Shown: positions 27,185 through 64,000, counted from the stretch's first letter. The stretch: DNA of 64,000 nucleotides from Amoebophrya sp. A120 (GCA_905178155.1 CAJINV010000005.1:7494989-7558988), one strand, 5' to 3'. Numbers and translations: made by a program. Notes: a model not told the origin generated them from the sequence alone.

Positions 27185-27240
27185 CCCGTAGCCATTTTGG
27201 CTCAAGGCCTTGCGCCTTGTTGCCACGTTTCCATAGAAAA
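27185..27240 (+). ncRNA. Dinoflagellate spliced-leader RNA gene candidate (or intact SL relic)
   Basis: Exact CCGTAGCCATTTTGGCTCAAG at 27186-27206 followed by GC (possible donor); 3' end estimated. Confidence 0.7.
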
Positions 27241-44683: not shown

Positions 44684-45877
44684 GACGAGAGAGCAAGTAA
44701 CAGCGGTCCGAAGATGGAGACGCAGCTAAAAAAGAAACTTAGCGAACTCAGCTATTGTTGCAGTGGAGAAGGAGGGTGCGCCCCCATTGTTTTTTTTCTT
44801 GTCACGAGCCTCTATTATATCATACACATATTCCTCGCATTCCTTCCAGTTCCAGCGACGTGGTCGTAGCTACTTGTCTTGATATTTATATAGGCGGGAT
44901 CCAGAAAATGAAAAATGACTTTCCGGAGGACAAGAGCGAGCGCCATTTTTTACCTATTATATGCTACATGACTGACTAGCACACGACAACGAACTTACTA
45001 GACTGCTTCTTCAAGGCAGGCTGCGTCGTGGATTCGGTCGCCGGGAGGAATCCACGACCACGCAGCCGCTTCGTTTGATTTCGAAAGCCTACCTTCATGC
45101 TTATATTTCAAAGCTTGCGTCGAGATTTCTCATGAAAATGTCCACACTTAATAATTAAAAGTCACTTTGAGTTTGATTTTCGCCAAAATCTTCTGTGTGT
45201 CGCAGCCTTTGTAGCCCTGAAGATACGCATACAGCTTTATATTGTTTCTTCCGACGAGCAAGAATGGTCGGAACTACGTCGATGTAAGTGAGGAGCAGGT
45301 CTTAGTGTCAGTAAACTCAAATTGTGGCACTTTCCCTGTAGATCTTCATGGCTGTTTTTCCCGAAAAATCAAGTAAAATGACTCTGCTTCATCCCTTCAT
45401 GAGACATCGGCGCTCGTCAGTTGACAAGGATCCAGATTCATTACCGGCAAGATTCTGTGTTTGGCGAGACCTGTAGGCTCTTGCGAGTAGATGTCACAAC
45501 AAGATAGCACCAGCAAGCAAACAAACATGATAATGGGGCAAAACACTGAAAAAAAGATCTCCGGAAGAACACGTGGCAAAGGATCTCAGCATTCTTAGCG
45601 CTTTGGGTAAGTACAAAGATTACACGACTTCAAGATGATCGGATAGTTACTCTCTGCCAGAACTTTTGTGCAAAGATGGCGGTCGCCGTAGGTTTGAGCA
45701 CAAGCTCTTGTTATTTCCAATGATCGTTTCCGCAGACTTTCTTACTGATATTTGCAACAGCGAAATACAAACTCAAACAAGAGACGTGATATCTTCGACC
45801 CCTGTATTATCTCCTGTACCTGTATTCCTTTAGTTTGTTTTCCTCGTATTTCAGTCCAACCAAAAAACCTGTCCAAA

Positions 45878-48800
45878 ATGTCGAACGGCGACAACGGTTC
45901 CAAAGAGGCCAAAGCGCTGGAAAAGGAGCGCAAGGCCATCGAAAAGATCATGAACGAGTCCGACGACATGTTTTGCGGGTTTGTGAAGCTGCAAATCCTG
46001 GACCAAGACGCCTACCCTCGGCAGATCAAGGGTGCAGACATCGGTGGGGTTGTGCATGTCGAGAAGAAGGTATGAGAGTGCGTAAGCAGTCCCGCTCCAC
46101 CCAATCTTCTGAGGGGTAAAGATGCTGTTCAGCAACACAACCAACAGCAGAAATGACACTTTTGCATGACAAATCCTAATCCACGCATGTGCCGTAGTGT
46201 GGAGTTTCGAATGTAGTTCTTGGAGCTTGTCATGCAAGGTAGTGCTCCGAGGCAGTATTTTGAGGTTCACGTTGTGTTTTTGCATCATTACAAACGAAGG
46301 TAAGAGGGAGTTCTTGCGCCCTCTCATAGAAGGAAGGCGGCAAAGTCTTCCTGAAGGCAACCTTTTCGGCGAATCCGCTGTTTTACCTGGAGTTGCAACG
46401 TGACAACAACATGTTTCTGGCTGGCGAAATGTGGTACGGAGACGCGATATTGAGAGGAAAAATTCCCCCTCACCATATTGAAAAGGTATGTTTCCGAAAA
46501 TTTGCGTTGCTGATTTGTGGCCACAAATCAGGTTTGTCTTGCAAGAAGACAAGTGCAGAGGCATCCGCCCAATTGTGAAGCGATTTGGCATTCTCTTGGT
46601 CCTAGAGGGTAGCCGTTTGCAATGCTGAACAACTAGACCTGAGTGCTCCCACCCAGGCTGCGGATCTGGCAGGGGTGCCGTACTGCAAGACAAGTCGGAG
46701 TTGTGTACAGAAATCTGCATCAGAAATTTTCATTTTGATATGGGGAGGGGGGATTTTTCATTTCGATACGCGAAGCGCGGGCCCACGAACCTGATTGGCA
46801 AGCTGATTCCGAAATCCTGTATGGAAAGAAAAAAACACGCATCACAAGCTACCACATCCGCACTTTTTGATTTTTATTGGTGCTTTTGCAATGCAAGAAG
46901 ATCTTCTCTCACACACTTAACAAAATGTGACTCTTCAGAGTGAAGCCCTGTACTGAATTCCTTGATCATAATTCTGCAATACAAGAAAAAAAAAAAATGA
47001 ATTTGTAAATGCGACTGAGAGCTGTGTTAGCGTTTCTCATGCAAAACTATCATGCAAAAGACCCGTGTAGAACTCGAGAATTGAAATTCTTGTGGCGATG
47101 GTGTTTTTGTTTTCCCTTCCATACCCTGCGAGCAGATCGTGAACCTGATGGACAAGATATCACAGGAGAAAGTGTTAACGTTAACGGAATCTGTGATGCA
47201 GTAATGCATCAAAAAACGTGCCCAAATTTGTCATGCATAGCGTGCGCGCTAGGAAACATTTGTCATGCATACTCGCAATCTATGAAAACCGTTAAGGTTA
47301 GCGCTTTTTTGTTTGATACAAGACCAAGGAACAGGAATTCACGATGAAGATGTATCGCAAGAAAAAACTGTTTCACTGTGAACTTGTGATGCAGAGAATG
47401 GAGCACAGAACGATTTGTCTTGCTACACCTGCAAGACATTGGATTTTTCAGCGTGTTTTCCCTTGGGAAGCCCGCATGGCAAATTTTCTGTGTCATGTGT
47501 AACAAACTTGTGATGCAGATCTTGCAAGATCATCACAGTGAAACAGTTTTTTCGTGGGATAAGATGGTATGAAAGTGCCCAACGAACTCGCTTTATTCCC
47601 CTCCAGTTTGTCATGCAAAGAAACAAATCCAACCTTTCCCTCGTAGTGCTGTTTGCATGACAGATTCTGGCAGACTAACTACAATGCCGACGTGCTGTGA
47701 ATTATCATGCAAAACCTGCACGCTTCCCAACGTTTCTATTGCTGTTCATGCAAATTTACAATCGACTTCGAGGGGGAGTTCTTCGCTGCGCTCTTTTATA
47801 GATGGAGATGCCCTATGAACTGCAAAAGTATCGTACTCGTATAAATGCATTACAAATTTTCCCAGCATGAGAAAGATAATTTGTAATGCTGATTTGCCTT
47901 GACAAAGAAATTACTATCTAAACTGCAACATCTGGTCAAAAATGCATGCGAGGGGTATGTTCGGGGGTATGTTCGGGGGTGTGTCAGGGGTATGCAAATG
48001 GAAGTCAATCACGACCTGAATACAAATTTTTGGCGAAAAAGCAGAAGGTGGGGTATAAACATACCCCAGACACACCCCAGACACACCCCAGACATACCCC
48101 AGACAGACCCCCGAACACACCCCAGGCAAAAAGTCCGAACATACCCCAGACACACCCCAGACACACCCCGGGCAGACTTTCGAACACACCCCGGGCAGAC
48201 TTTCGGACACACCCCGGGCAGACTTTCGGACACACCCCGGCCAAGCTTTCGGACTTTGTCATGTGGGGTCTGGACCCGAAGCCCAGTCTGTCACGCGAGA
48301 CCGCGCGGCCAAGGGGCGATCGAAAGCCCTAGGTCAGCGCGGGGACTATGTCCCCGCGCCATGACCTAGGGGCCAGCTGCGGGCGCTTCGCCCCCGGACA
48401 CCGTGCGGCCGAGGCCAAGGGGCGAAAGCCCTAGGCCAGCGCGGGGACTCGGTCCCCGCGTCATGGCCTAGGGGCCAGCTGTGAGCGCTTCCATCGATCC
48501 CGGGGGGGCACCGTGCGGCCAAGGGGCGAAAGCCCTAGGCCAGCGCGGGGACTCGGTCCCCGCGTCATGGCCAAGGGGCCAGCTTTGAGCGCTCCCTCCC
48601 CGGACACCGCGCGGCCAAGGAAGGGGCGAAAGCCCTAGGCCAGCGCGGGGACTCGGTCCCCGCGTCATGGCCTAGGGGCCAGCTGCACGCCCTTCCCGGA
48701 CACAGTGCGGCCAACGCACGGGCGAAGGCCCTACCTAGGCCAGCGCGGGGACTCGGTCCCCGCGCGCCATGGCCTAGGGGCCTGCTGTAAGCGCTCCCCG

Positions 48801-51360
48801 GACACCGTGCGGCCAAGGGGCGAAAGCCCTAGGCCAGCGCGGGGACTCGGTCCCCGCGTCATGGCCTAGGGGCCAGCTTTGAGCGCTCCCTCCCCGGACA
48901 CCGCGCGGCCAAGGAAGGGGCGTGCGAAAGCCCTAGGCCAGCGCGGGGACTCGGTCCCCGCGTCATGGTCTAGGGGCCAGCTGCAAGCGCTTCCCGGACA
49001 CCGTGCGGCCAAGGGGCGATCGAAAGCCCTAGGCCAGCGCGGGGACTCGGACCCCGCGTCATGGCCTAGGGGCCAGCTGTATGCGCTCCCCGGGGGCCGT
49101 GCGGCCAAGGGGTGAAAGCCCTAGGCCAGCGCGGGGACTCGGTCCCCGCGCCATGGCCTAGGGGCCAGCTGCAAGCGCTTTCGTTCCGGACACCGTGCGG
49201 CCAAGGGGCGAAAGCCCTAGGCCAGCGCGGGGACTCGGTCGGCCCCCGCGCCATGGCCTAGGGGCCAGCTCTGGGCGGGCGTCCCCCGGACACCGTGCGG
49301 CCAAGGGGCGAAAGCCCTAGGCCAGCGCGGGGACTCGGTCCCCGCGTCATGGCCTAGGGGCAAGCTGCGAGCGCTTCCCGGACACCGTGTGGCCAAGGGG
49401 CGAAAACCCTAGGCCAACGCGGGGACTCGGTGGGCCCCCGCGTCATGGCCTAGGGGCCAGCTGCAGCCAAGCGCTTCCCGGACACCGTGCGGCCAAGGGG
49501 CGAAAGCCCTAGGCCAGCGCGGGGATTGGTCCCCGCGTCATGGCCTAGGTGCCAGCTGTGAGCGCCCCCCGGACACCGTGCGGCCAAGGGGCGGAAACCC
49601 TAGGCCAACGCGGGGACTCGGTCCCCGCGTCATGGCCTCTCGGACGCGGTGCAGCCAAGCAAGGGGCGAAAGCCCTAGGCCAGCGCGGGGACTCGGTCCC
49701 CGCGTCATGGCCTAGGTGCCAGCTGTGAGCGCCCCCCGGACACCGTGTGGCCAAGGGGCGGAAACCCTAGGCCAACGCGGGGACTCGGTCCCCGCGTCAT
49801 GGCCTAGGGGCCAGCTGGGACGGAGCGCTCCCCGGACACCGTGCGGCCAAGGGGCGGAAACCCTAGGCCAGCGCGGGGACTCGGTGGGTGGGTCGGTCCC
49901 CGCGGCATGGCCTAGGGGCTAGCTACGAACACGGCCCGGGGGGGAACCACACCGCGCGGCCAAGGAAGGGGCAAAGAAAAATCCTAGGGCAATGTGGGGA
50001 CTCTGTCCCCGCGCCATGACCTGGGGGCCGGCTCCAGACCCGGCGCCCGTTTCTTCTTTTCTTTTTATCTTTGCGCGCGGCAGGTTAATGAATCTAGTGC
50101 GCGCAAGCAAGGGAGCCGCGTCCGCAGGCCCGTCGCGGGTCATTGAATGCAAGGCGCACCGAGATAACTAGCTGCGAGCGACCTTTCTGCCCCGTGCCAC
50201 CGCACAGACAAATGCCGGAAGGTCGCTGCACGGGGACTCTGTCCCCGTGCTCGGGCCTTGTTTGTAATGCAAGACCTGCATTTATACGAGTGCGATACTT
50301 TTGCACAGCATATGCCCTTCCTGAAGGACGCTCCGAACCGCCTGGCTCCGCTTATGGCGTTCTCAACTGTTACATTCTCAGCTGTTTCATGGTTTGTCAT
50401 GCAAATTCACAAGCAGAAAGCTCGATGCGATCAAGCTGCTTCGCATGACAAATTCTCAGAGGCCTCAGCAGGCTGATACTCTGCACCAAATCTGTCATGC
50501 AAGACGCGCAAGGTCCCCCGTTTCACTTTTGCCATTCTTGCATTACAGATTCATGTAACAGTTGAGAATGTAACGATTGAGAACCCCATACCGCTGCACG
50601 TGGTCACGAGAGAAGAAAAGTTCGTCACCAAAGTGGCTTCGATATGGCGGAAGAAAAGTTTGGGGTGTTAGGTCACAGCGAGTTTTTCGAGGAAAATTGA
50701 TTCCTGAGCAGTGGGCTTGCAGATCATCTACATGTTCTGATTCAGATTTTTTTGCAGAGGAACGAACAAATTCGAATTTGATATAAAGCAAAAAAATGGA
50801 GATTTTGACAGCAATTTGATTACCAATTTGTTTCGTGTACCTCTACCACGCGCTAATACCCCGTGTTTTCACTCCTTTCGATACTCCGTCTGCTTGGAAC
50901 TCGGCGAAAACGAATGGAAGGAGTGGAAAGAGTACAGTTTTTGTTCCGGGAGACCAAAATTTTTACTTTTCATTTTTCGTAATCAAAATTTATATTACTT
51001 GACTTTGTAATGCGTGGGAAAAGCAACCTTTCGTGTCGTAGATGTAGTGGCGCAGACGCATCCATTTTGATTTTGAGGCTAGGGCTACTTGTTTGCGCCA
51101 GACAAACCCAAATTTGAAAAAGAAAAATAACCAACAAGGTACCGTGTGCGATTCTGGAAGCAGACCAAGGCCTGGGGTGCTTCTCCCGGAGATATCCAGG
51201 AAAAAACACCCATCCCCATCCATTTTCTGCATGACACATAGTGGATCTTATGCATGTTTTGCATGACAAATTGGATGGGGATGGGTGTTTTTTCCTGGAT
51301 AGGAGACGGCGGAGACGAAGACGACAAGAAGAAGGATGAAGGCGCAGACAAGAAAGAGTA
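45878..51360 (+). CDS. ~190-aa hypothetical beta-rich protein split by 9 introners
   Basis: Reconstructed MSNGDNGSKEAKALEKERKAIEKIMNESDDMFCGFVKLQILDQDAYPRQIKGADIGGVVHVEKKEGGKVFLKATFSANPLFYLELQRDNNMFLAGEMWYGDAKRGPTNLIGKLIPKSCEQIVNLMDKTKEQEFTMKMEMPFLKDAPNRLAPLHV..YRVRFWKQTKAWGASPGDGGDEDDKKKDEGADKKE*. Confidence 0.75.
46071..46328. mobile_element. Introner (tatgagagtgc family)
   Basis: TIRs; TSD gaagg. Confidence 0.85.
46448..46768. mobile_element. Introner (tattgagaggaaaa family)
   Basis: TIRs; TSD cgcga. Confidence 0.85.
46820..47123. mobile_element. Introner (tatggaa..aaaacac family)
   Basis: TIRs; TSD tcctg/ccctg. Confidence 0.8.
47158..47318. mobile_element. Introner (tatcacagg family)
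   Basis: TIRs; TSD caaga. Confidence 0.8.
47353..47561. mobile_element. Introner family E
   Basis: TIRs; TSD agatg. Confidence 0.85.
47568..47800. mobile_element. Introner adjacent to the previous one
   Basis: TIRs; TSD gatgg, overlapping the previous TSD. Confidence 0.8.
47951..48255. repeat. 11-12 bp (acacaccccag) and ~23-bp (acacaccccgggcagactttcgg) minisatellites, with an inverted ggggtatgttc block
   Basis: Direct reading. Confidence 0.85.
48301..50030. repeat. Tandem array of ~18 GC-rich, palindromic ~97-bp units
   Basis: Unit ggccaaggggcgaaagccctaggccagcgcggggactcggtccccgcgtcatggcctaggggccagct[variable]ccggacaccgtgc. Confidence 0.95.
50353..50590. mobile_element. Introner family F
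   Basis: TIRs; TSD ccgct; empty site in the copy near 55389. Confidence 0.85.
51193..51301. mobile_element. Introner family G (109 bp)
   Basis: Perfect 29-bp TIR; TSD ggaga. Confidence 0.9.
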
Positions 51361-52565: not shown

Positions 52566-54052
52566 ATGCTTTACATTTGCTTTTCGGTTCTCCTCTAAAG
52601 AACGCAACAACTTCTCCACCTACCATGCCTGATAAAATGAGAGGTCGTGGCTCCCCAACATCCGCCTCCGACAAGACCGCTCAACATGGTGGCGCGCCAA
52701 CATCGAGATTGTGCCTTCCAGCAATGAGTAGGCTGTTTTTTACAGCTCTGGCCGTCGATCCCCTTAGGGTGATGCTTTTGCTCGATCTCCGTTCCCTCTT
52801 CTTTTCCCCGAGCGCCACCGAGACCAGAGGCGAAAGTAACCAGAGCGGGATGATGAAAGATGAAGGACGAGTCGGAGTCTCGTCAATCTGGAACTACCAT
52901 GACAAAGCATCGTCTATATCTCTGCTTTCTCAACACTTACACTTCTGCCACGCGCACCGGATTGGACGACATGCCACACGTAAAACCAGGATCATGCGGA
53001 AAAAGTCGAAAATCAAGGCTGCCATCGCGACGGCTTCTAATCCTGTTGAGGATGTCCATGTCGATGCCGGGATGGACTTCGAGGACACACACGAGCAGGG
53101 TAAGGAGCCGGCATTATCCTCGAGGAAGCCTTCTGCTGCTGCTTCGCAAGCGCTTTTTTCAGCGGATGCGCGACAAGGTGGTCCTGGATCTTCTGTTTTC
53201 GCCTCCAGTGGGAGCTCTTCGTCCTCAGCATCATCGCTAAAAACCTCCACAGCATCAAAGCAGGAACCTAGACTACCGATAGCAGTAGCGAGATCTTCCA
53301 AGCATAGAACGCGCAGACACGACGATTCTCCTGCACCAGACGAGAGGAGGTACAAGAGCAACGAGAACGACCACGAACAGCAAGACTTCATGCAACAGCA
53401 ACTTCCGGCTCCGGCAGAAGCTGTAGCGGTGTCTTTTTCTTCAGACAAAGCAAACAAGGTAGTTTCTTCTCATCGTCGCCACCCTCGGGCGAAAACAAAC
53501 GGTCCCATTCGGGAGCCACTAGACCCAGGCTGTGGTAGTTTTTGGCCCTCGACCACCGGCGGACAATGTCTACAGCACGATTGCGCAGCACCACGACCAG
53601 CAGTTCCCTGTGTTGACGGTTGTACTTGCCTGCCTTACGTTCCCACCAGTTTCAGTCACTTCCAGAGCCACCTGCAGGGGTACTACCCAACGACAAAGAA
53701 TTGTCTGTCGTTCATTCACTCGCTGCCCTCGCGCAGCAGCCGGAGCTCCCCGAGTTCGCCGACCCGAAGCTTGAGCTCGGTTTTACTTCATAGCAGAGAA
53801 GACGGGCACGAGGTGGAGAACCATGGCGACTCCTCGACGCACAAAAACTCAGGCAGAAGTCCTCAGTGTCACGGGACGAAAGACGCAGCATCTTCGTTGA
53901 ACTTCTGTTCGTCCCCGAAGATGTGCTTGGTGGACAGCCGAGCAAGACTTGGTGCTCAGTGGCACTCAGTGGATCATCGAGTTCGAGTAAGACATCATGA
54001 TCATTTCAGAAATGCAAAAATAAGAACCCAAAACACAAGAAGTACTTACACC

Positions 54053-54700
54053 ATGAGCCGTCCCCGTGTGCTGTACGTCTTTCTGCAAGCCGACCCGGAC
54101 AACAGTTTTCACCCGGCTATCAAGCAGTTGTGCGAACAAACGCAAGAAAACGCCGCGGTGGAATTTCTCATCAAGCTTCGTCCAAAACTGCCGGAAGACC
54201 TGCCGTTCTGCGAAAAATGCGAGATTTTGATGATCTCCCCTTTCACCGGCGGGGGCAATGGTGCGTTGCTGGCGAACTGTTTGTCTAACCTGAAAAATTT
54301 GAAATGGATTCACTCCCTCTCCGCTGGCGTGGACATGATCGTCCCGACGCTGCAACAGCACTACCTCGGTGGCATGATGAGCACAACAGGGTCTACTTCA
54401 TCTTCTGCCGGTGCCGCAGCACAGCTGAAAATGCCACCTTTGACGAACGCGAAGCACGTATGGGAGTGTCAGGATCGAAATCAACAAAATCGAAGTGATT
54501 TGTGATGCATAAAGCCGATACCACTTGGAGCCTCAGTTTCCAAGTGGCGCATGACAAACTTCGATAGCACGAAAAGCCCGTCTGTCATGCTGTTTGGGCA
54601 AAGAGGACTGCTCCTATCGTGCTGCTCCGGCAGCACGATAGGAGCAGTCTGTGACATGGCCTCCGTTTCGCTAATTCCGGATGGGGCGGTAAGTACTTAT
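54053..54700 (+). pseudogene. Truncated copy of the 2-hydroxyacid dehydrogenase 5' region
   Basis: Near-identical to 61413-62475 but lacking two introners; then jumps to a piece matching 63957-63992. Confidence 0.85.
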
Positions 54701-56613
54701 TTGATTTTGTGATATTCATATTGAAGAAACTTGTGATGTGGATTGAGCACCATCGTCAACCCGTCTGTGATACGAAAATCAGCATGGCGAATTATCCTAT
54801 AAACAATCGTATCAAACAGATCTTCGTTTCCCTTGGGCGTGGTTCGTGTGTGGACGAGCAGGCGTTGATTCAAAATGCACCTCTATGATGCGAAAAATTA
54901 CTAGCACACGTGACTTCTGCATCGGTATTTTTGTGAAGAAGCAGAAGTAGATCTGTTCTGTAACAACTGTCGTACGAGGATCTGTCATGAAAACGTGACC
55001 TCCAAAGCGCAAGCAATGCAAAGTTGTAGCTGTGACGGAAGACGCAGCATCTTCGTTGAACTTCTGTTCTTCCCTCCAAAATGTCGAATTTCTCATGCAA
55101 TAAAACCTGCAAGCTTCCCAACGCTTCTATTGCTGCTCATGCATTACAATTGACGTCTAGGCGGGGGAGTTCTTCGCTGCGCTCTTTCATAGATGGAGAT
55201 GCCCTATGAACTGCAAAAGTATCGTACTCGTATAAATGCATTACAAATTTTCCCAGCATGAGAAAGAAAATTTGTAATGCTGATTTGCCTTGACAAAGAA
55301 ATTTGTAATGCAAGACCTGCATTTATACGAGTACGATACTTTTGCACAGCATATGCCCTTCCTGAAGGACGCCCCGAACCGCCTGGCTCCGCTGCACGTG
55401 GATGACAAGAGAAAGAAGATGACGAAAGACGCAGCATCTTCGTTGAACTTCTGTTCGTCCATGAAAGTGGTGCACAACGAACTCGCTTTCTCCTCCAGTT
55501 TGTCATGCAAAGAAACACATCCAAGTCCGACCTTTTTCTCGTGGTGCTGCGTCTGCGGGTTTTTCTGTGTTTCAAGGTCAGAGCACAAACTCGGATAGCA
55601 CTCTCGTGCCCTGGCCTGCAGAAGTGTGCTCCTAAGATTTCTTGATATCGAACTCAAATCCGAGAATTCCTCAGATGCGAGCTCACATCCGAGAACTCCT
55701 CACATGTGAGCGCACATCCAAGAGTTAGAAGGTCAGAAGAACTGCGCAGCATAATCTTACGCGACAGGCTTACAGCAGTGCGCTCTTTGGATTTGTGTGT
55801 TGCGCCTCCAATTGCCTCACTTGGAGTCGCGGTTCAAACTTTCACACGCAGAGCGCGGCGATTCGCAAGTTTAGCCGAATGCGTAGGGATTCCTGAAACT
55901 TGTGGATTCCTGAAGTCGAAATCCTGGGAACTCATTTCTGTAAGTCCGTTGCGTAGGATTTGCACTCAGGTGGGGATTACCGATCGAAATGCAGATCCTA
56001 CGCAACCTACTTACAGAAATGAGTTCCCAGGATCCCACATCCGAGAATTCTCGGACGTAAGTCCACATCCGAGAAATTTTCGAACGTGGACTGACATTCG
56101 AGAATTCCTCGGATTGCAGCTCACATCCGAGAACTTCGCGGATGTGAGCCGCAAGAGAACTTTCGCGCGCAAAGTGCCGAACTTTGGCGCCCTGCTCGTG
56201 AAAGTTCGATCCGCGTGTCCAAGTGGGGTGATTGCAGAAAAAACCCGGAAATCCTGGGAACTCATTTCTGTAAGTCCGTTGCGTAGGATTTGCACTCAGG
56301 TAGGATTTGCACTCAGGGACGGAAGACGCAGCATCTTCGTTGAGCTTCTGTGCTTCCCAAGGCACAACTACTTTTGTGCAAGAATGATGGGGAACATGCC
56401 GCCAAGTTTTCGCCGAAGTTTTCAGCAGAAGTCCTTTTCCCAATGATCGTTTCATCACAAGACCTTCTTTATTGATGTTTGCAACAGCGAAATAGAAACT
56501 CAAACAAGACACGTGATATACCTATACCAAGGACCCCTGTATTATCTACTGTACCTGTAATCTTTTCAGTTTGTTTTCCTCGTATTTCAGTCGAACCCAA
56601 AAACCCGTCCAAA

Positions 56614-57667
56614 ATGTCGAACGGCGACAACGGTTCTAAACAGGCCAAAGCTCTGGAAAAGGAGCGCAAGGTATCCCTTGTGAAATCGCGATTAGCAGCT
56701 TCAATTTGTAATGCAATGATGCGTATGATAGCAAGCTATCAGACATCATTTGATTACGCATTACAAGTTGGAACAGCTGGCAAGGATGATTTTACGTAGC
56801 ATGCAAGGCCATCGAAAAGATCATGAACGAGTCCGACGACATGTTCTGTGGGTTCGTCAAGCTGCAAATCCTGGACCAAGACGCCTACCCGCGGCAGATC
56901 AAGGGTGCAGATATCGGCGGGGTTGTGCATGTGGAGAAGAAGGTATGAGAGTGCCTAAGAACTCCTACTCCACCTCATCTACAGAGGGGTAAAGATGCTG
57001 CTCAGCAACACAACCAACAGCAGAAATGACGCTTTTGCATGACAAATCTTAATCCGTGCATGTGCCGTAGTATCGAGTTTTGAATGTAGTTCTTGGCGCT
57101 TGTCATGCAAGGTAGTGCTCCGAGGCGGTATATTGTTATTGAGGTTCACGATCACGTTGTGTTTTTGCATCATTACAAACGAAGGCAAGAGGGAGTTCTT
57201 GCGCCCTCTCATAGAAGGAAGGCGGCAAAGTCTTCCTGAAGGCAACCTTTTCGGCGAATCCGCTGTTTTACCTGGAGCTGCAACGTGACAACAACATGTT
57301 TCTCGCCGGCGAAATGTGGTACGGAGACGCGATATTGAGAGGAAAAATCCCTCCTCCCCATATTGAAAAGGTATGTTTCCGAGAATTTGCGTTGCTGATT
57401 TGTGACCACAAAGCAGGTTTGTCTCGCAAGAAGACAATCGCAGAGGCATTCCCCCAATTGTGAAGCGATCTCGCATGCTGTTGGTCCTAGAGGGTAGCCG
57501 TTTGCAATGCTGAACAACTAGACCTGAGCGCTCCCACCCAGGCTGCGGATCTGGCAGGAGTGTCGTACTGCAAGACAAGTCGGATTTGTGTACAGAAATC
57601 AGCATCAGAAATTTTTATTTTGATATGGGGAGGAGGGATTTTTCATTTTGATACGCGAAGCGCGGGC
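56614..57667 (+). pseudogene. Truncated copy of the 45878 gene 5' region with one extra introner (56672-56803)
   Basis: Shares introners 56944-57213 and 57333-57653 with 46071-46328 and 46448-46768. Confidence 0.85.
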
Positions 57668-60600
57668 GGGGGGGGGACGAAAGACGCAGCATCTTCGTTG
57701 AACTTCTGTTCTTCCCCGACGAGTTATAATTTCGCGACCTCCTCATCTTCTTCCTCTTCGCCTGGCGGGTATTTTGATCCGGGAGGCTGTGGTGGGCGCA
57801 GGTCTACGGACTTCTGCCGGTCCTTCATCGAAGTAGACCGGGACGGGCGGGAGCGACAAAAACGAGGACAATCCCTGCCGCCGTGTGGTGCTATCGGTCA
57901 GCTGTTTGCTTCTGGTAGTCGTCGTGTACTAGCCGGAGGTACTGTGGGAAACAACAACTACGAATCTGCCGTTCTTGCATCAGCGGGAGACAGTTCAGTT
58001 GCAGAGGCATCTTCAAAAAGCGGTGATAGTTGTAGCAGTCCGTGGGGCCAACGCCGCCGAAACCGGTTTGTCGCAGTGACACCGGCAGCGGCATCTTCGG
58101 CACGAAATGCGACCGACTCTGCTGCCAGAAAGAGCGTCTGCAACTACGTGGGAGCTGCCTCTGCAGCCAGTAGACAGCACAGCCGTGATATGGAGATCGA
58201 CGAATGCCCAGCAATAAAGCCGGAGGGCCAGTCCGCTTCGGAAGGTGCAGTACGACATGATGAAACTACGAGCGCACCGGCCAAAAGAACTTCATCTCCC
58301 TCCTGTTTTCTATCCGGTGTAAAGTGTCATCTACACAGACCACCTGGCGCAGGGAACGAGGACTTTGTCATGCGTGATAGAAATCATGCGTTTCACTCCG
58401 TAGTAGACATGTGCGCATGACAGGTTGAGTTGGTCGTCGTCGTAAAGGCTTTCTTTACACATGTTGATAGTTTCACTACATCCTCCAGGCGACGCCAGCG
58501 GGGATCGGCGGTGGTGGATCACCAGCTGCAATGGTTGCAGCTCAACATCATATGAAGCGATCTCGTTCGGCGGGAAGGTCGACTTCATCTGCAGGTTCCG
58601 AAAACAAAAACTTCTCTGCGGCCGCACAACTTCTAGTTGGCGTTGGATCTGCTCAAGTAGAACCGGGAGCAGGAGAAGTGGATGAAAGTAGAACCCTACC
58701 GCGAGAAGAAAAGTACATTTCGCCAGAAAAAGTTCTCACACCGGGTTTGCAACCTCCGTGGCTGATGACTTCTTCCAGGAGCCCGGTAGATGAGCAGATG
58801 GAGAACTGTTTTAATAAAGGCGGCGAATCTAGTACTGATGCGCAGGAGATTCTTGCGCAGGATGTCGATAAGCCGCGGTCTTCAGGATCACAGGACTCGG
58901 TGGACGACTGCTCACGATTCTCACAGCCTGGTGATGCTCGTACTCCGAGCGAGCACGAGATGGGGACTACGGGGAGTCGTAGTCGACCACACGCAGAAGA
59001 TGCTGCTAACAGGGCAAAAAGCAGGGAAAAGATGAAGACAACCTCCAGTGGCCTCACAACTCGCAATCCAATTTCCCCCGTTCTCCGCGACGAGGATTAC
59101 ACACCGCAAGACACGCCGACCCCGCCGGTTGCGCAGTGGCCGCCGGGGCCAGCACGGGCAAATGATGGCTCGAGAAGCAACTCTCCTGAGAATGGTGGTC
59201 GTGGTACGCAAGGAAACCCCGACCCGATGGGCTCCTCGCCCAGAACAGGTACAAGAGCCTCGTCTTCGCCTTCCGCCGCCGATCGAAATAGGGACCAACG
59301 TGGCACCAGCTACGGCCGACGCGGACACAATGGCAGCTCAAGTTCTACATCGACTACAGCTGTTCCGTGTTCACCGGTCGAGCCACAAATTGGCCCGCAC
59401 TACAACCAGGAGGACACAAGTACTTCTAGCCCTCGTCAAGAACAACAGCCACAGCCACACGGCAACCTGCGGCGGCCGCAAGAGGAGCGGCTTCTGACTG
59501 CAACTACCGGTGGCATCAACGCTCCCGCTTCTAGTGGTGGCCCACCGGCCGGGAAACATGAACTCGACCAAATCACCTGCATCCTCTCGGCGCACCGAAG
59601 CCGGCGCCGCCAGGCGTTGTTGAGCCGAACAGTCGCCGGGCAGCATCGGATTTTGCTGGAGCAGCGCGCTGCCACTGCTACGGGGGCCTCTTCATCTACA
59701 GCAGGAAAAAGGAAAAATGGGAACAATCGTCCTCCAACAGCTCCTTCTACGGGCGGAATAAACGCAAGTGGCGGAAGGGCCACAAGTGCATGGGACCACG
59801 CGGCCCAGGAGTCGTGGCTGAGCTCACTATCAAATGCAAATATGTCTGGGTCTGGACGAATGCGGAAGTTTGTCATGCAGGTTTTGCGTGACCCAGAAGG
59901 TCTGGTATGTAAGTCCTAGCATGACACGTCTTGTTGAGATGAATGTGTCTCAATGCCTAATCCGCATGACAAACTCCTTCTTTTGGTGCCAAGTTTTGGG
60001 CGGCGTTTGCTGTTCATGCATGACAGATCTTTGTGTTGTGTGAAATGTGCATCACAAGTTGATGCACCATCCTTTCAGACCCGGACATATTTGCAATGCA
60101 TACTCAGCCCCGTCGGACGAAACACAGCCCGTACGGAACTCTTCGGGCCGGAGAAATACAAATAGCAGAAGGGTCGCTGGCCGAGAGAACGTCGGACCAG
60201 ATGGCGCCACCAGACAGCGCCGGCGGGACCGACTGTATCAATGCGTGTCCAGTCTGCTCGGGGGCGGGTGTCGGTGAAGGAATGAATTAGTAGAATCAGT
60301 AACTTCTACTTCAACTTCTGCATCTGGTATAACACGAACGACGTCGTTACAACGGCTCCTGCAGGAAGACAAAGTGCTGGTGAAAGGCACCATTTTTGCA
60401 ATTCAATTTTGCCATTTTTTGAGAAACCAGTTAGAATGCCCTTTTACGTGTCGTGTTTTTGCTGGAGCAAGAGGATACACTTTCTGTCAAAACCTGAAGA
60501 TTCTGATTTTCTGCAACATGCATTTTTTTGTGGAGCTCCGATTAAGTAGTTTTTTGACGCGAGACCAAGATGTTAGCGACCCTGTGCACCGTTCTTGCCG

Positions 60601-61412
60601 TGGAAGCGGTCAAGTATTGACGAATGCACATGGTAGCCGTAGCGGGCCTCGTGCAGCCTTCTTTTTTCTGCGAAACAAATTTACATCTATACTATGCATC
60701 TGTAGATGATTTGCAGCATTACAATATTCTTTCCTTTCCTTATCTTTTGTTCCCTTTCCCATTTTTGAGATTACAGTAGGTATTTCCGGTTGTTGGGTTC
60801 AATCTTTATTTCTTCGAGAATACATGAGTACAAGCTGTAGTGTCAGATAAGAGGGGACGACGGTTGTGGATTTCTCTTTTTTCATCTTCTCCACCCTGTC
60901 CCGCAATCGAACCCACAAGCTAACTCACGGTCCGTGACGACGCTGTGCTGATACTGCATTCTGAGCTCGGACGATCTTGTCTTCTTTCAATGTGTTCGAG
61001 ATCCTCAACGTCAAGGATCTCGGTTTTCTAAATTTAGGGCGTTGAAAAAGCACCAATTGCTTCTTCCAGTACATAGCATGCATGGACTATCGGATTGTTT
61101 TTTCGGATTGTTTTTAGTGTGTAGAGTCATTGTTGTTTTTTACGCAACTGTATCTATCGGAGATCCTGATGACCCGAGCTAATAAATCATCTTTGTAACT
61201 AAGCTGAAGCCTCGCAGACGCAGTAGCGGCGCGGGTGCGCCATTTTCTTGTTGACACCCGGGTGCCGTACAATGCAATAAATGTCCCAGTTTTTGGGTCC
61301 GCAACTCGTACTTCCCACCTTTTGAACTTCACGTTCGCGGGTGGATCATCGAGTTCGAATAACATATCATTCAAGAAAGGGAAAAATAACCCAAAACAAA
61401 AGTAGTTACACC

Positions 61413-64000
61413 ATGAGCCGTCCCCGTGTGCTGTACGTCTTTCTGCAAACCGACCCGGAGAACAGTTTTCACCCTGCTATCAAGCAGTTGTGCGAGCAAA
61501 CGCAAGAAAACGCCGCGGTGGAATTTCTCATCAAGCTTCGTCCGAAACTTATCAAAATGAAAAATCCCCCCTCCCCATATTGAGACGGAAACTTCTGTTG
61601 CTGAATTTGTGTACACAAATCAGCCCTGTCTTGCAGTGAGGCACTACAGGCAAAGCCCCAGCCTGCGTATGGGTGTTTTGTTGTAGGCTCTTGGCATAGG
61701 AGAGGCCTGCCATGTAGGTGAAACAGCATTACAAATCGCCTCCATAAGGCGGCGGATTCTTTGGCTTTGCCTTCTTGCAAGACAGATGTGATTTGTGACC
61801 TCAAATCCGCAACACAAATTTTTGCAAGCATACCTTTTCGATATGGGGAGGGGGGATTTTTCCTCTCAATAAAATTGCCCGAAGACCTGCCGTTCTGCGA
61901 AAAATGCGAAATTTTGATGATTTCACCCTTCACCGGCGGAAGCAATGGTGTATGCATCGCAAAAAAAGCGTACTAGTACAAACTGCATGGCAAATTTGCT
62001 CAGCATGAAAAATGGACTTTGTCATGGTGGTTCACCCTGGGTGGTAGATTTGTCATGCCTATCTGCAATTCGTCACAAACTTTTGCAATGCATATGCCGC
62101 GTTGCTGGCGAACTGTCTGTCGAACCTGAAAAAGTTGAAGTGGATTCACTCCCTCTCCGCAGGAGTGGACATGATCGTCCCGACGCTGCAGCAACACTAC
62201 CTCGGCGGCATGATGAGCACATCAGCAGGGTCCACTTCATCTTCTACCGGCGCCGCAGAACAGCTGAAAATGCCACCTTTGACGAACGCGAAGCACGTAT
62301 GGGAGTGTCAGGATCGAAATCAACAAAATCGAAGTGATTTGTGATGCATAAAACCGATACCACTGGGAGCCTCAGTTTCCAAGCGGCGCATGACAAACTT
62401 CGATAGCACGAAAAGCCAGTCTGTCAGGCTGTTTGGGCAAAGAGGACTGCTCCTATCGTGCTGCTCCAGCAGCACATCGCCCTCCTCTAAACAGGCTTGG
62501 AATCGGTCTCATTTGCCTGCTCCCCAACACAGGCCTTACTTACCCTACATTTTATGCATTACAAGTTTTTCGATTTGGTCGATTTCAAACCTGACGCTTC
62601 CATAGCACGCCTTCTCCTACTCGCTCGCGGAGTACGCTTTGTTTGCGATCCTGTTTTTCACGAAGCAGGCACGGCGGCTGCTCGAGTATGCAATGCAAAA
62701 GTATCGTACGTAGTAGAAATTGCATTACAAATTCCCCCAGCATTACAAATTCAATTTGTAATGCTGATTTACCTTGAGAATTGGATTTGTAATGCATAAA
62801 TTCAATTACTACGAGTACGATACTTTTGCACAGGATATCGAGAACCAAAGGACGAAGACCTGGGACCGGTTCCAAATGAACTGGCTTGCGGGGGGCAGTG
62901 CGATAGCAGGGACGAATAGTGGCAGCGCGAATCTTAAATCGCAACCCGCACTGGGGAAAAAACTCGGATTCATCGGGTTCGGCAGCATTGGGAAGGCGTG
63001 CTACGATATCGTACGAAAAAAGTGTTTCACTGTAAGGATTTTGCAAGGTTTGCGTCACAAGTGTGTTTTACATCACAGAGAAACTTTGCCATGCGAGATT
63101 CCTAAGGGAAAACACAGGCAAAAATCCATTGTCTTGCATGTGCAGCAAGACAAATACTTACATTTTCTGCATTACAAGTTTACACTGAAACAGTTTTTTC
63201 TTGCGATATACGATTTGCTTGTCGGCAGCAAGAGGAGAACGCAGCTCGCCACGCCCGGTGGCCCGGCCGGCACCGGCGGCATATCGTGTGCAAAAGTATC
63301 GTACTCGTACAAATGCAACTCTTGCATTACAAATCTTGTTTGCAAGGCAAATCTGCATATACAAATTTCATATTCTCATGCTGAGGAAATTTGTAATGCA
63401 TTTATACGAGTACGATACTTTTGCACTTCATACGGCATTCCCTGGAGCCAAGTGCTCGTACACCGAAGAACCCGGGACAGTGCGACTGCAGGGAGTGACG
63501 GCGGGGGAATTGCGACTGCCGGTGCACTATCAAATGCAACTATGTCTGGGTCGTCTGGAAGCGTGGAAAGTTGTCATGCAGGTTTTCCATGACCCATGAG
63601 GTCTGGAATGCGGGACCTAGCATGACACAGTCTGCGAGGTCTCTGCCATGCCTGTCCTGCATGAGAAACTCCCTCCTAACTTTGTCGAAAGTGGACGGCT
63701 TTTGGCACTCATGCAACACAGATTTTAGCATTATTCGGATTTAGCATGACAAGTTCCAGACCCAGACACTTTTGCAATCCATATGCACAATCCGCGATCA
63801 CGTTTCAAGAGGACTTTTCAACCAGTGAGGAACAGTTGGTTGAGACCCACCCAGACTACCTGCTCGGCGAGTACGCCAGCAAAGAAGATGTTTTCGCGAA
63901 ATCGGACGTGATCATATGCACGTTGCCGGGCACGGCGGAGACGCACCATTTCTGCGACATGGCGTCCGTTTCTTTGATTCCGGATGGGGCGGTACTTACT
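61413..64000 (+). CDS. D-isomer-specific 2-hydroxyacid dehydrogenase, NAD(P)-binding (runs off the window end)
   Basis: LKWIHSLSAGVD, LTNAKHAFSYSLAEYALFAILFFTK, Rossmann LGFIGFGSIG, SDVIICTLPGTAET; 7 introners at 61550-61871, 61951-62094, 62298-62604, 62687-62837, 63007-63208, 63282-63432, 63528-63783. Confidence 0.92.

Follow-up and report, generated by a model that had tools for sequence, protein, structure and literature searches.

How does a protein-coding exon come to hold five direct copies of a short piece of itself, with pieces of the neighbouring genes lying between them? The question is raised by a 64,000-nt stretch of Amoebophrya sp. A120 (contig C5:7494989-7558988 of a 115.5-Mb genome in 401 contigs), which was analysed at its full length and is called the window below; all positions are counted from its first nucleotide unless another contig is named. 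In the window, a host gene, here called H, is interrupted by an array in which five copies of a short sequence, R, alternate with four spacers, and the array is flanked by gene X on the upstream side and by gene D, encoding a 2-hydroxyacid dehydrogenase, on the downstream side. A preliminary description of the window had likened the array to a CRISPR (clustered regularly interspaced short palindromic repeats) or integron system that captured fragments of both neighbouring genes. Our analysis points in another direction. With middling confidence, we read the array as what templated insertion left behind after a coding exon of H had suffered one widely staggered break; R would then be a long target-site duplication, the piece of H between the two nicks.

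Repeat, spacers and joints

A repeat search of the window returns R as five direct copies (53873-53921, 55032-55080, 55419-55467, 56316-56364 and 57674-57722), which are 82-96% identical to copy 1 and enclose four spacers, as originally described. The core common to all five copies spans ~39-43 nt (ACG[A/G]AAGACG...TG[T/G]C[G/T]TCC), corresponding to 13-14 codons, while 49 nt are common to R1 and R5 only. R stands in frame in the open reading frames (ORFs) on both sides of the array (ORF 52577-54505 and ORF 57560-58420), encoding TKDAASSLNFCSS(P), which bears out what had been said of its coding potential. A search of the whole 115.5-Mb genome with a 27-nt core of R (≤3 mismatches) yielded five forward hits, no reverse hits and none in the control, and all five hits lie at the array. 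Because the core is found at these five sites only, R is neither a chance match nor a dispersed element, a possibility that the preliminary description had itself raised; R as a dispersed element or a transposon end was rejected on the same ground. The core was not found in the metagenome contigs searched. R is single-copy host sequence, and its outer copies, R1 and R5, run on into the reading frame of H. These features, together with spacers that have their sources elsewhere in the genome, are those of a stacked target-site-duplication insertion, and they support the earlier proposal that R was originally one site, duplicated anew at each joint.

Among the five copies, 7 substitutions were counted over 5 x 40 nt, of the same order as the divergence of the cargo between them. 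R1 and R3 are identical in their cores, and two variants, a G at position 7 and a T at position 39, are common to the non-adjacent copies R2 and R4. The self-complementary ends that had been ascribed to the repeat are present in copy 1 and absent from the others, and the DNA of all five copies folds no better than shuffled sequence (z -0.5 to -1.2). A structural hairpin in R was rejected, since the fold is neither significant nor conserved among copies.

Apart from fillers of 2-47 nt, every spacer maps to X, to D or to dispersed transposons (Table 1). The spacers are ~1110, 345, 855 and 1310 bp long, all four are on the + strand and in the sense orientation, and the pieces of X stand in reverse order. 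About 2.9 kb was copied from the two flanking genes, introns included, and the gene sources lie 3-10 kb from the array on either side. Sequence matches confirm the original assignment of spacer 1 to the 5′ part of the dehydrogenase gene, and of spacer 2, the start of spacer 3 and spacer 4 to the upstream gene; spacer 1 also gives a weak Pfam match to 2-Hacid_dh. Spacer 3 is mosaic, joining three sources with no R in between: a piece of X is followed by fragments of two transposable elements, TE-A and TE-B. At the other genomic copies of TE-A, the flanks continue into the element, and no other copy is present in the window. TE-B contains a 57-nt direct repeat (55918-55974 and 56248-56304) with inverted copies at 55990-56033. 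The same internal layout is found in the copy at G000:C4:10681662, indicating that this repeat belongs to the element and is no local duplication.

The content of the spacers constrains the nature of the template. A transcript contig (57332 to 55353 in array coordinates) joins 46447 to ~50313 in the X mRNA, indicating that X 46448-50312 constitutes a single large intron. Sequence from deep within this intron makes up spacer 3a and most of spacer 2, and the cargo therefore derives from DNA or from unspliced RNA. In the array, an AT..AT splice removes a miniature inverted-repeat transposable element (MITE) at 55199-55352.

The boundaries of R2-R4 are nearly constant, starting within 0-2 nt and ending within 1 nt. 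Specifically, the joints from cargo into R always enter R between (G)G and ACG, with no filler after spacer 1, AT after spacer 2, a 17-nt stutter after spacer 3 and six G after spacer 4. The joints from R into cargo leave R2-R4 after TCC or TCCC, followed by ~0-9 nt that have no assigned source, while at R1 the shared sequence extends for a further 7 nt before a 47-nt filler. Microhomology amounts to 0-3 nt at most joints, with one possible 5-nt match, and fillers are present at five joints (2, 6, ~9, 17 and 47 nt). The 47-nt filler was rejected as a fifth source, because it is unique in the genome. By eye, it looked like a relic of a spliced leader (SL); such relics at the 5′ ends of the cargo were rejected, and local alignment of the dinoflagellate SL to each joint scored no better than 13-99% of random 61-nt windows. 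No common tail is seen at the cargo 3′ ends, and no poly(A), element 3′ tail or SL relic was found in the pieces. R-like motifs beside the parental fragments (TTGAACTTC upstream of D, GTTCGTC in X) represent possible microhomology only.

The resemblance of this layout to CRISPR arrays, and likewise to integron cassette arrays, lies in a short repeat that alternates with unrelated spacers. Only this alternation, along with transcription of the array, speaks for a dedicated system of repeat-spacer acquisition, which we regard as barely credible. CRISPR arrays have uniform spacers of ~20-70 bp derived from foreign elements, whereas the spacers here are long and uneven (345-1310 bp) and come from the organism's own genome, namely the neighbouring genes X and D and resident transposons. 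Integron attC sites have a conserved imperfect inverted-repeat structure, whereas R has no conserved structure, does not fold significantly and occurs at one locus only. No cas, recombinase or integrase Pfam domain, including that of a tyrosine-recombinase integrase, was found in 25 ORFs of the window, a limited search in that the ORFs are interrupted by introns, and no nuclease domain was found nearby. Furthermore, all gene-derived spacers are of a single age, consistent with a single episode and at odds with serial acquisition, and R is ordinary coding sequence of the host gene that was broken by the event. The CRISPR- or integron-like interpretation was accordingly given up.

Table 1. Features of the array, the host gene and the parent genes
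Feature	Position	Strand	Evidence or remark
R1, native left target copy, 49 nt in common with R5	53873..53921	+	repeat search, genome core search, joint alignment
47-nt filler, 5′ joint of spacer 1	53922..53968	+	no match to D, X or H; unique in genome
Spacer 1, 5′ untranslated region (UTR), N-terminal exons and introns of D (2-hydroxyacid dehydrogenase)	53969..55034	+	BLAST to 61341-64344, 84-94% identity
R2	55035..55074	+	preceding GTG derives from D parent
Spacer 2, deep-intron sequence of X (MITE 55205-55353 included) and X exons C and D	55082..55418	+	X 47696-47912, 50261-50352, 50591-50620
R3, core identical to R1	55421..55460	+	repeat search, BLAST
Spacer 3a, X intron 47569-47651	55461..55549 (89 nt)	+	BLAST
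Spacer 3b, internal fragment of the longer dispersed transposon TE-A, young	55554..55891	+	97-99% identical to other copies
Spacer 3c, second transposon piece, TE-B, ending in the 17-nt stutter that abuts R4	55918..56315	+	dispersed copies
R4, most diverged copy	56316..56358	+	spanned by DNA contig 56272-56832 and RNA contig 56310-56671
Spacer 4, 5′ region of X, exons A and B, an introner	~56368..57667	+	X ~45658-46782
Run of six G, filler at the joint of spacer 4 to R5	57668..57673	+	joint alignment
R5, native right target copy	57674..57722	+	repeat search, joint alignment
H, upstream coding part (H-up), start of annotated P0001	52625..53872	+	ORF 52577-54505; RNA contig 52700-53904
H, downstream part (H-down): exon to 58306, intron 58307-58470, exon from 58471	57723..59919	+	ORFs 57560-58420 and 58531-59919
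Parent gene X, source of spacers 2, 3a and 4	45658..50620	+	sequence match
Parent gene D, source of spacer 1	61341..64000, on to 64344 beyond the window	+	BLAST; last 344 nt obtained separately

Integrity of the assembly and age of the cargo

The A120 genome is known for introners, MITE-like introns with inverted ends and 3-5-nt direct repeats, and for non-canonical splicing (PMC7789003, PMC12130899). Such features recur in the window, as in the AT..AT splice described above. The copies in the array are 7-8% divergent from their parents and differ from them in introner content, indicating that they are separate loci. Short-read contigs from two other data sets (genomic, X1; RNA, X3) match the array with 0 mismatches over three joints of R and spacer, from R1 into spacer 1, from R3 into spacer 3, and from the transposon block through R4 into spacer 4. 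The genomic X1 contigs retain the intron 58307-58470. An assembly artefact, arising from chimeric long reads or from a collapsed or expanded repeat, would be in keeping with the lack of a read over the whole 3.8 kb and with short-read contigs that end within R1, R3 and R5, an unavoidable outcome of 31-mer graphs. An artefact would, however, have to produce copies that are distinct from their parents in both substitutions and introner presence, and array-specific sequence that is reproduced without mismatch in two further data sets; we consider its probability negligible.

The gene-derived cargos differ from their parents by 61/837 substitutions in spacer 1 (7.3%), 11/133 in spacer 2 (8.3%, MITE left out), 6/80 in spacer 3a (7.5%) and 87/1111 in spacer 4 (7.8%). 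The four divergences are mutually indistinguishable, whereas TE-A differs by 0.9% from its nearest genomic copy. On the basis of these equal divergences of 7-8% versus 0.9%, the gene cargo is assigned to one episode and the transposon block to a later time. Thus, the substitution counts point to the arrival of all four gene-derived cargos in one episode, and indicate that the transposon fragment joined later, exactly at the start of R4.

Parents and copies also differ by whole insertions. Four stretches are present in the parents only (61550-61870, 61951-62098, 62476-63950 and 50353-50590); where their ends were read, they show TAT...ATA ends and a short duplication, and are introners. The 1.5-kb stretch 62476-63950 was identified only by the MITE matches inside it. 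In spacer 4, the copy of X exon 1 carries an introner (56672-56802, GTATCC...TAG, with the 5-nt duplication GCAAG) that the parent is without, and introners therefore also land in non-functional copies. The introner differences between parent and copy are insertions after the duplication and provide no evidence of splicing. Intron-less, retro-copied cargo was rejected, because the segments missing from the copies are introners of the parents and one introner is present in a copy only.

In the large intron of X, a MITE is split by a G+C-rich satellite (47913-50260), and the same MITE is intact in the array copy; because the array copy lacks the satellite, the satellite arrived after the duplication. 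The satellite is a 2.35-kb block of ~70% G+C composed of palindromic units of ~96-104 nt (tandem units at 48294-50045), and it contains 11- and 23-nt repeats of the ACACCCCAGAC type at 48059-48251. The MITE and introner segments differ between copy and parent by 1-3% (3/189 in spacer 2, 55205-55393 compared with 47814-47912 plus 50263-50352; 6/188 in spacer 1, 54449-54636 compared with 62285-62475), versus 7-8% in the flanking sequence. Gene conversion among MITE copies, or constraint, could underlie this low divergence.

Long target duplications and a proposed mechanism of insertion

A second array is located on the same contig, 5.44 Mb upstream (L009 6174-9646), and comprises five copies of a 43-69-nt target, 0.7-1.1 kb apart. 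As in the array in H, copies of a piece of the target alternate with inserts, but the cargo of the second array consists of transposons from distant loci, dispersed elements with many copies elsewhere. The duplicated interval varies by insert (72, 55, 56 and 35 nt), and two of the inserts are diverged members of one family. Single insertions were sampled for E1, a ~1.1-kb non-coding retroelement-like family that starts with TATCTAGCACGGGCGG and ends with GCCGTATAGTATATAGGGTATT; the sample consists of 11 single copies (L023-L033), and E1 is also present at L009 6243-7274 and 8109-8771 in the second array. Direct repeats of 15-72 nt flank 10/11 copies (64, 55, 72, 51, 15, 56, 35, 29, 46 and 50 nt), with GTA or TA frequently closing the duplication at the 5′ joint. 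The 3′ end of E1 abuts the downstream repeat exactly, while the 5′ joint often contains 19-28 nt of filler, and one copy is 5′-truncated. Target-primed reverse transcription acting at widely staggered nicks would be expected to give this geometry.

A connection to RNA is provided by the SL. The canonical dinoflagellate SL has 76 dispersed copies in the genome and 0 in the control, and GT follows in 0/7 copies examined. One of the 76, an exact 21-nt SL at 27186-27206 of the window with no GT after it, probably marks a retroposed SL-capped RNA, and no SL RNA gene. On the minus strand of another locus, L022 (G000:C1:13502241-13505261), an SL-capped insert of ~1.34 kb is bounded by direct repeats of 26 nt that match at 23/26 positions, and 2 nt separate the upstream repeat from the SL; in this one instance, RNA-derived insertion is tied to a long target duplication.

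Since E1, the second array and the SL-capped insert all carry long target duplications, such duplications are a property of the insertion machinery of this genome, and R, at 40-49 nt, is within their size range. The usual target-site duplications of elements without long terminal repeats (non-LTR elements) are 5-20 nt, and 40-70 nt is far longer. No paper describing reiterated long duplications in Amoebophrya was found. The preliminary description knew of no eukaryotic system with this architecture; its uniqueness is not supported, given the second array with its transposon cargo and the single retroelement-like insertions with their 15-72-nt duplications. What the locus in H adds is an original cargo taken purely from neighbouring genes, with deep-intron sequence and of one age, a later transposon fragment joined exactly at one R start, and gene fission; the layout itself recurs in the genome.

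The formation of the array from one staggered break can be envisaged as follows. Two nicks in H, ~43 nt apart within a range of ~40-49 nt, would leave complementary 3′ overhangs. A template-jumping polymerase, either a retroelement reverse transcriptase or a repair enzyme like polymerase theta, would extend the right-hand overhang leftwards on a nearby template, which could be pre-mRNA still being transcribed or a sense DNA strand that an R-loop has displaced. The growing end would next switch to the left-hand overhang at its 3′ end and copy R as far as the duplex. If sealing failed, a new jump would add one cargo and one R, and four rounds would give R, spacer 1, R, spacer 2, R, spacer 3, R, spacer 4, R. 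The fixed start of R would thereby correspond to the end of the single-stranded template and its fixed end to the tip of the overhang, and serial jumping would account for the fillers, the stutter, the mosaic spacer and the uniform sense orientation. In vitro, serial jumps between templates are established for non-LTR reverse transcriptases (PMC8857657; bioRxiv 10.1101/2021.04.30.442027), and polymerase theta has been described as performing iterative templated synthesis (PMC5068794). The model is close to the polymerase re-priming during template-switch repair that had been offered as a second possibility in the preliminary description; the hairpin invoked there is not significant.

The order of the templates is of interest in this regard. 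In synthesis order, their 3′ ends are at 46782, 47651, 50620 and 64344, steadily downstream along the transcription unit X-H-D, and in the parent X only 44 nt separate the end of the spacer 3a source from the beginning of the spacer 2 source. With four pieces, this order is only suggestive of successive sampling of a growing nascent transcript or R-loop strand.

Among known processes, target-primed reverse transcription by non-LTR elements, including the formation of chimeric retrocopies, has several features in common with the array: host direct repeats bound the insert, one boundary is fixed, fillers and stutters occur, and the cargo can be a mosaic. The same genome also makes insertions of such geometry, as exemplified by E1. 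In contrast to target-site duplications of that kind, the duplication here is reiterated between cargos, and the cargos are unspliced pieces of neighbouring genes without poly(A) or element tail. The marks of RNA-derived cargo are absent, as there is no tail, the introns are retained and there is no SL relic; the template may have been unspliced nascent RNA. End joining by polymerase theta and paired-nick duplications are similar in that the sequence between the nicks is duplicated when a staggered break is filled in, and in that repeated priming, extension and dissociation leave fillers and stutters (PMC5068794, PMC12426944). The cargo of 0.1-1.3 kb per piece is, however, much longer than typical insertions by polymerase theta. 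Pack-MULEs and Helitrons likewise bring several host-gene fragments side by side, which are transcribed and can form chimeric ORFs, but the array has no terminal inverted repeats or Helitron ends, its bounding repeat is direct, host-coding and unique to the locus, and the unit is not mobile.

Local switching of a replication fork would yield part of the same picture. In fork stalling and template switching or microhomology-mediated break-induced replication (FoSTeS/MMBIR), a stalled or broken fork in H would have moved among DNA templates no more than ~10 kb away, coming back to H four times, with no link to the long duplications found elsewhere. The gene templates are indeed all in direct orientation and no further than 10 kb away on the same chromosome, the cargo contains introns, spacer 3 joins three sources without an internal R, and the joints show stutter and fillers; chains of this type (as in chromoanasynthesis), in which several nearby copied segments are strung at one site with orientation kept and with small complex joints, are well documented (PMC8421209, PMC13065848). 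However, the microhomology of 0-3 nt at most joints may be short for such switches, which typically use ~2-15 nt, and a fork is not predicted to return four times to the same start and exit, that is, to the same 40-nt anchor after each segment. A hairpin in R that could have stalled a fork is not significant, and the recurrence of the layout with mobile-element cargo from distant loci is not explained by local fork switching. We therefore judge this route to be improbable.

A further possibility is that the repeats came before the cargo, with H having contained five 42-nt (14-codon) coding repeats into which fragments were later inserted at unit boundaries. The length of R, exactly 13-14 codons, would suit such an origin, as would the a-b-a-b pattern of R variants, which resembles a higher-order tandem repeat, and the peptide after R5 (TSYNFATSSSSSSSP), which is loosely like the R peptide. 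However, R4 and R5 are preceded by GG or GGG, like the unique upstream context of R1, and not by the CCG expected at a unit boundary; four insertions would need to share the same phase; and the second array has a non-repetitive target with variable boundaries. A pre-existing tandem array is accordingly most improbable.

Several observations weigh against the reading of the array as the scar of a single staggered break. TE-A is far younger than the gene cargo, which requires at least two episodes at the same nucleotide and is fitted better by recurrent nicking than by a single event. The match between R2 and R4 in their variants is not what a clean single event predicts. With no tail on the cargo, templating by DNA fits as well as templating by RNA. 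For the order of the spacers we depend on the assembly, and the mechanism itself, with its enzyme, nicks and overhang polarity, is inferred.

Recurrent nicking is the core of the alternative of sequential independent insertions, in which the same pair of nicks in H would have been cut four or five times, for example by a site-preferring retroelement endonuclease, with one cargo and one R added each time. The clearly younger transposon block, placed exactly at an R start, is consistent with this alternative, as are the variable duplicated intervals of the second array and the diverged members of one family among its inserts. On the other hand, the four gene cargos are alike in divergence (7.3-8.3%), the near-constant boundaries of R differ from the range of 15-72 nt among single E1 insertions, and the R variants fit no order-preserving duplication tree. 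Furthermore, the gene cargo comes entirely from the two immediate neighbours, which independent trans-acting events would not be expected to pick four times. Taken together, sequential insertion appears rather unlikely to us.

We tentatively propose, as a possible but doubtful extension, that Amoebophrya has a previously undescribed route of templated insertion, in which breaks that leave ~40-70-nt overhangs are repaired by a template-jumping polymerase alternating between an available template and the overhang of the break, with the result that a repeat-cargo array forms, exons are shuffled between neighbouring genes and genes are split. The template would be transposon RNA or, at the array in H, the nascent transcripts of the neighbours or the strand displaced in an R-loop.

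The host gene and its coding consequences

Two annotated proteins correspond to the two sides of the array, P0001 and P0003, both of which are entered by NCBI as unnamed protein product [Amoebophrya sp. A120]. P0001 (626 aa, NCBI/EukProt) matches the locus at 100% identity. It is encoded at 52625-54505 in one frame that passes through H-up, R1, a linker of translated filler and 5′ UTR, and ~135 residues of a 2-hydroxyacid-dehydrogenase N-terminal domain, and the region is transcribed. P0003 (547 aa) begins at an internal Met of H-down, with 209 open codons upstream, R5 among them, and an RNA splice (58306^58471) joins the R5 exon in frame to ORF 58531-59919. H has no paralog of either half in the genome. 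Protein libraries contain no homologue of H-down, and for H-up they yield its own annotated protein and one low-complexity match only. Neither these searches nor that of the metagenome contigs brought up an empty site.

RNA contigs of a second study cover H-up, the joint from R1 into spacer 1, the joint from R3 into spacer 3 and, more weakly, the joint from R4 into spacer 4. Spacer 1 is transcribed, and an intron at 54688-54818 is spliced out in the RNA contig. RNA coverage is ~1 over TE-B and just before R5, and rises over H-down. The insertion has split H into two annotated genes or transcription units, an in-frame chimera of H-up with a fragment of D, and H-down. In one event, a gene was thus cut in two and the N-terminus of the host protein was fused in frame to a dehydrogenase N-terminal domain, and a copy of the 5′ region of a neighbouring gene now lies in front of H-down.

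Repeat-spacer layouts in this genome are not to be read as defence or capture systems. If the proposed mechanism is true, the locus would be the cleanest record in the genome that long-duplication insertion needs no transposon ends, and it would limit the enzyme to one that acts by copy-paste, jumps between templates and chooses them by proximity. The A120 genome is characterized by unidirectional gene clusters and fast-evolving proteins (PMC7789003, PMC12130899), and this locus matches that description. In a lineage whose proteins evolve very fast (PMC7789003), array insertions could contribute to gene fission and to the shuffling of exons.

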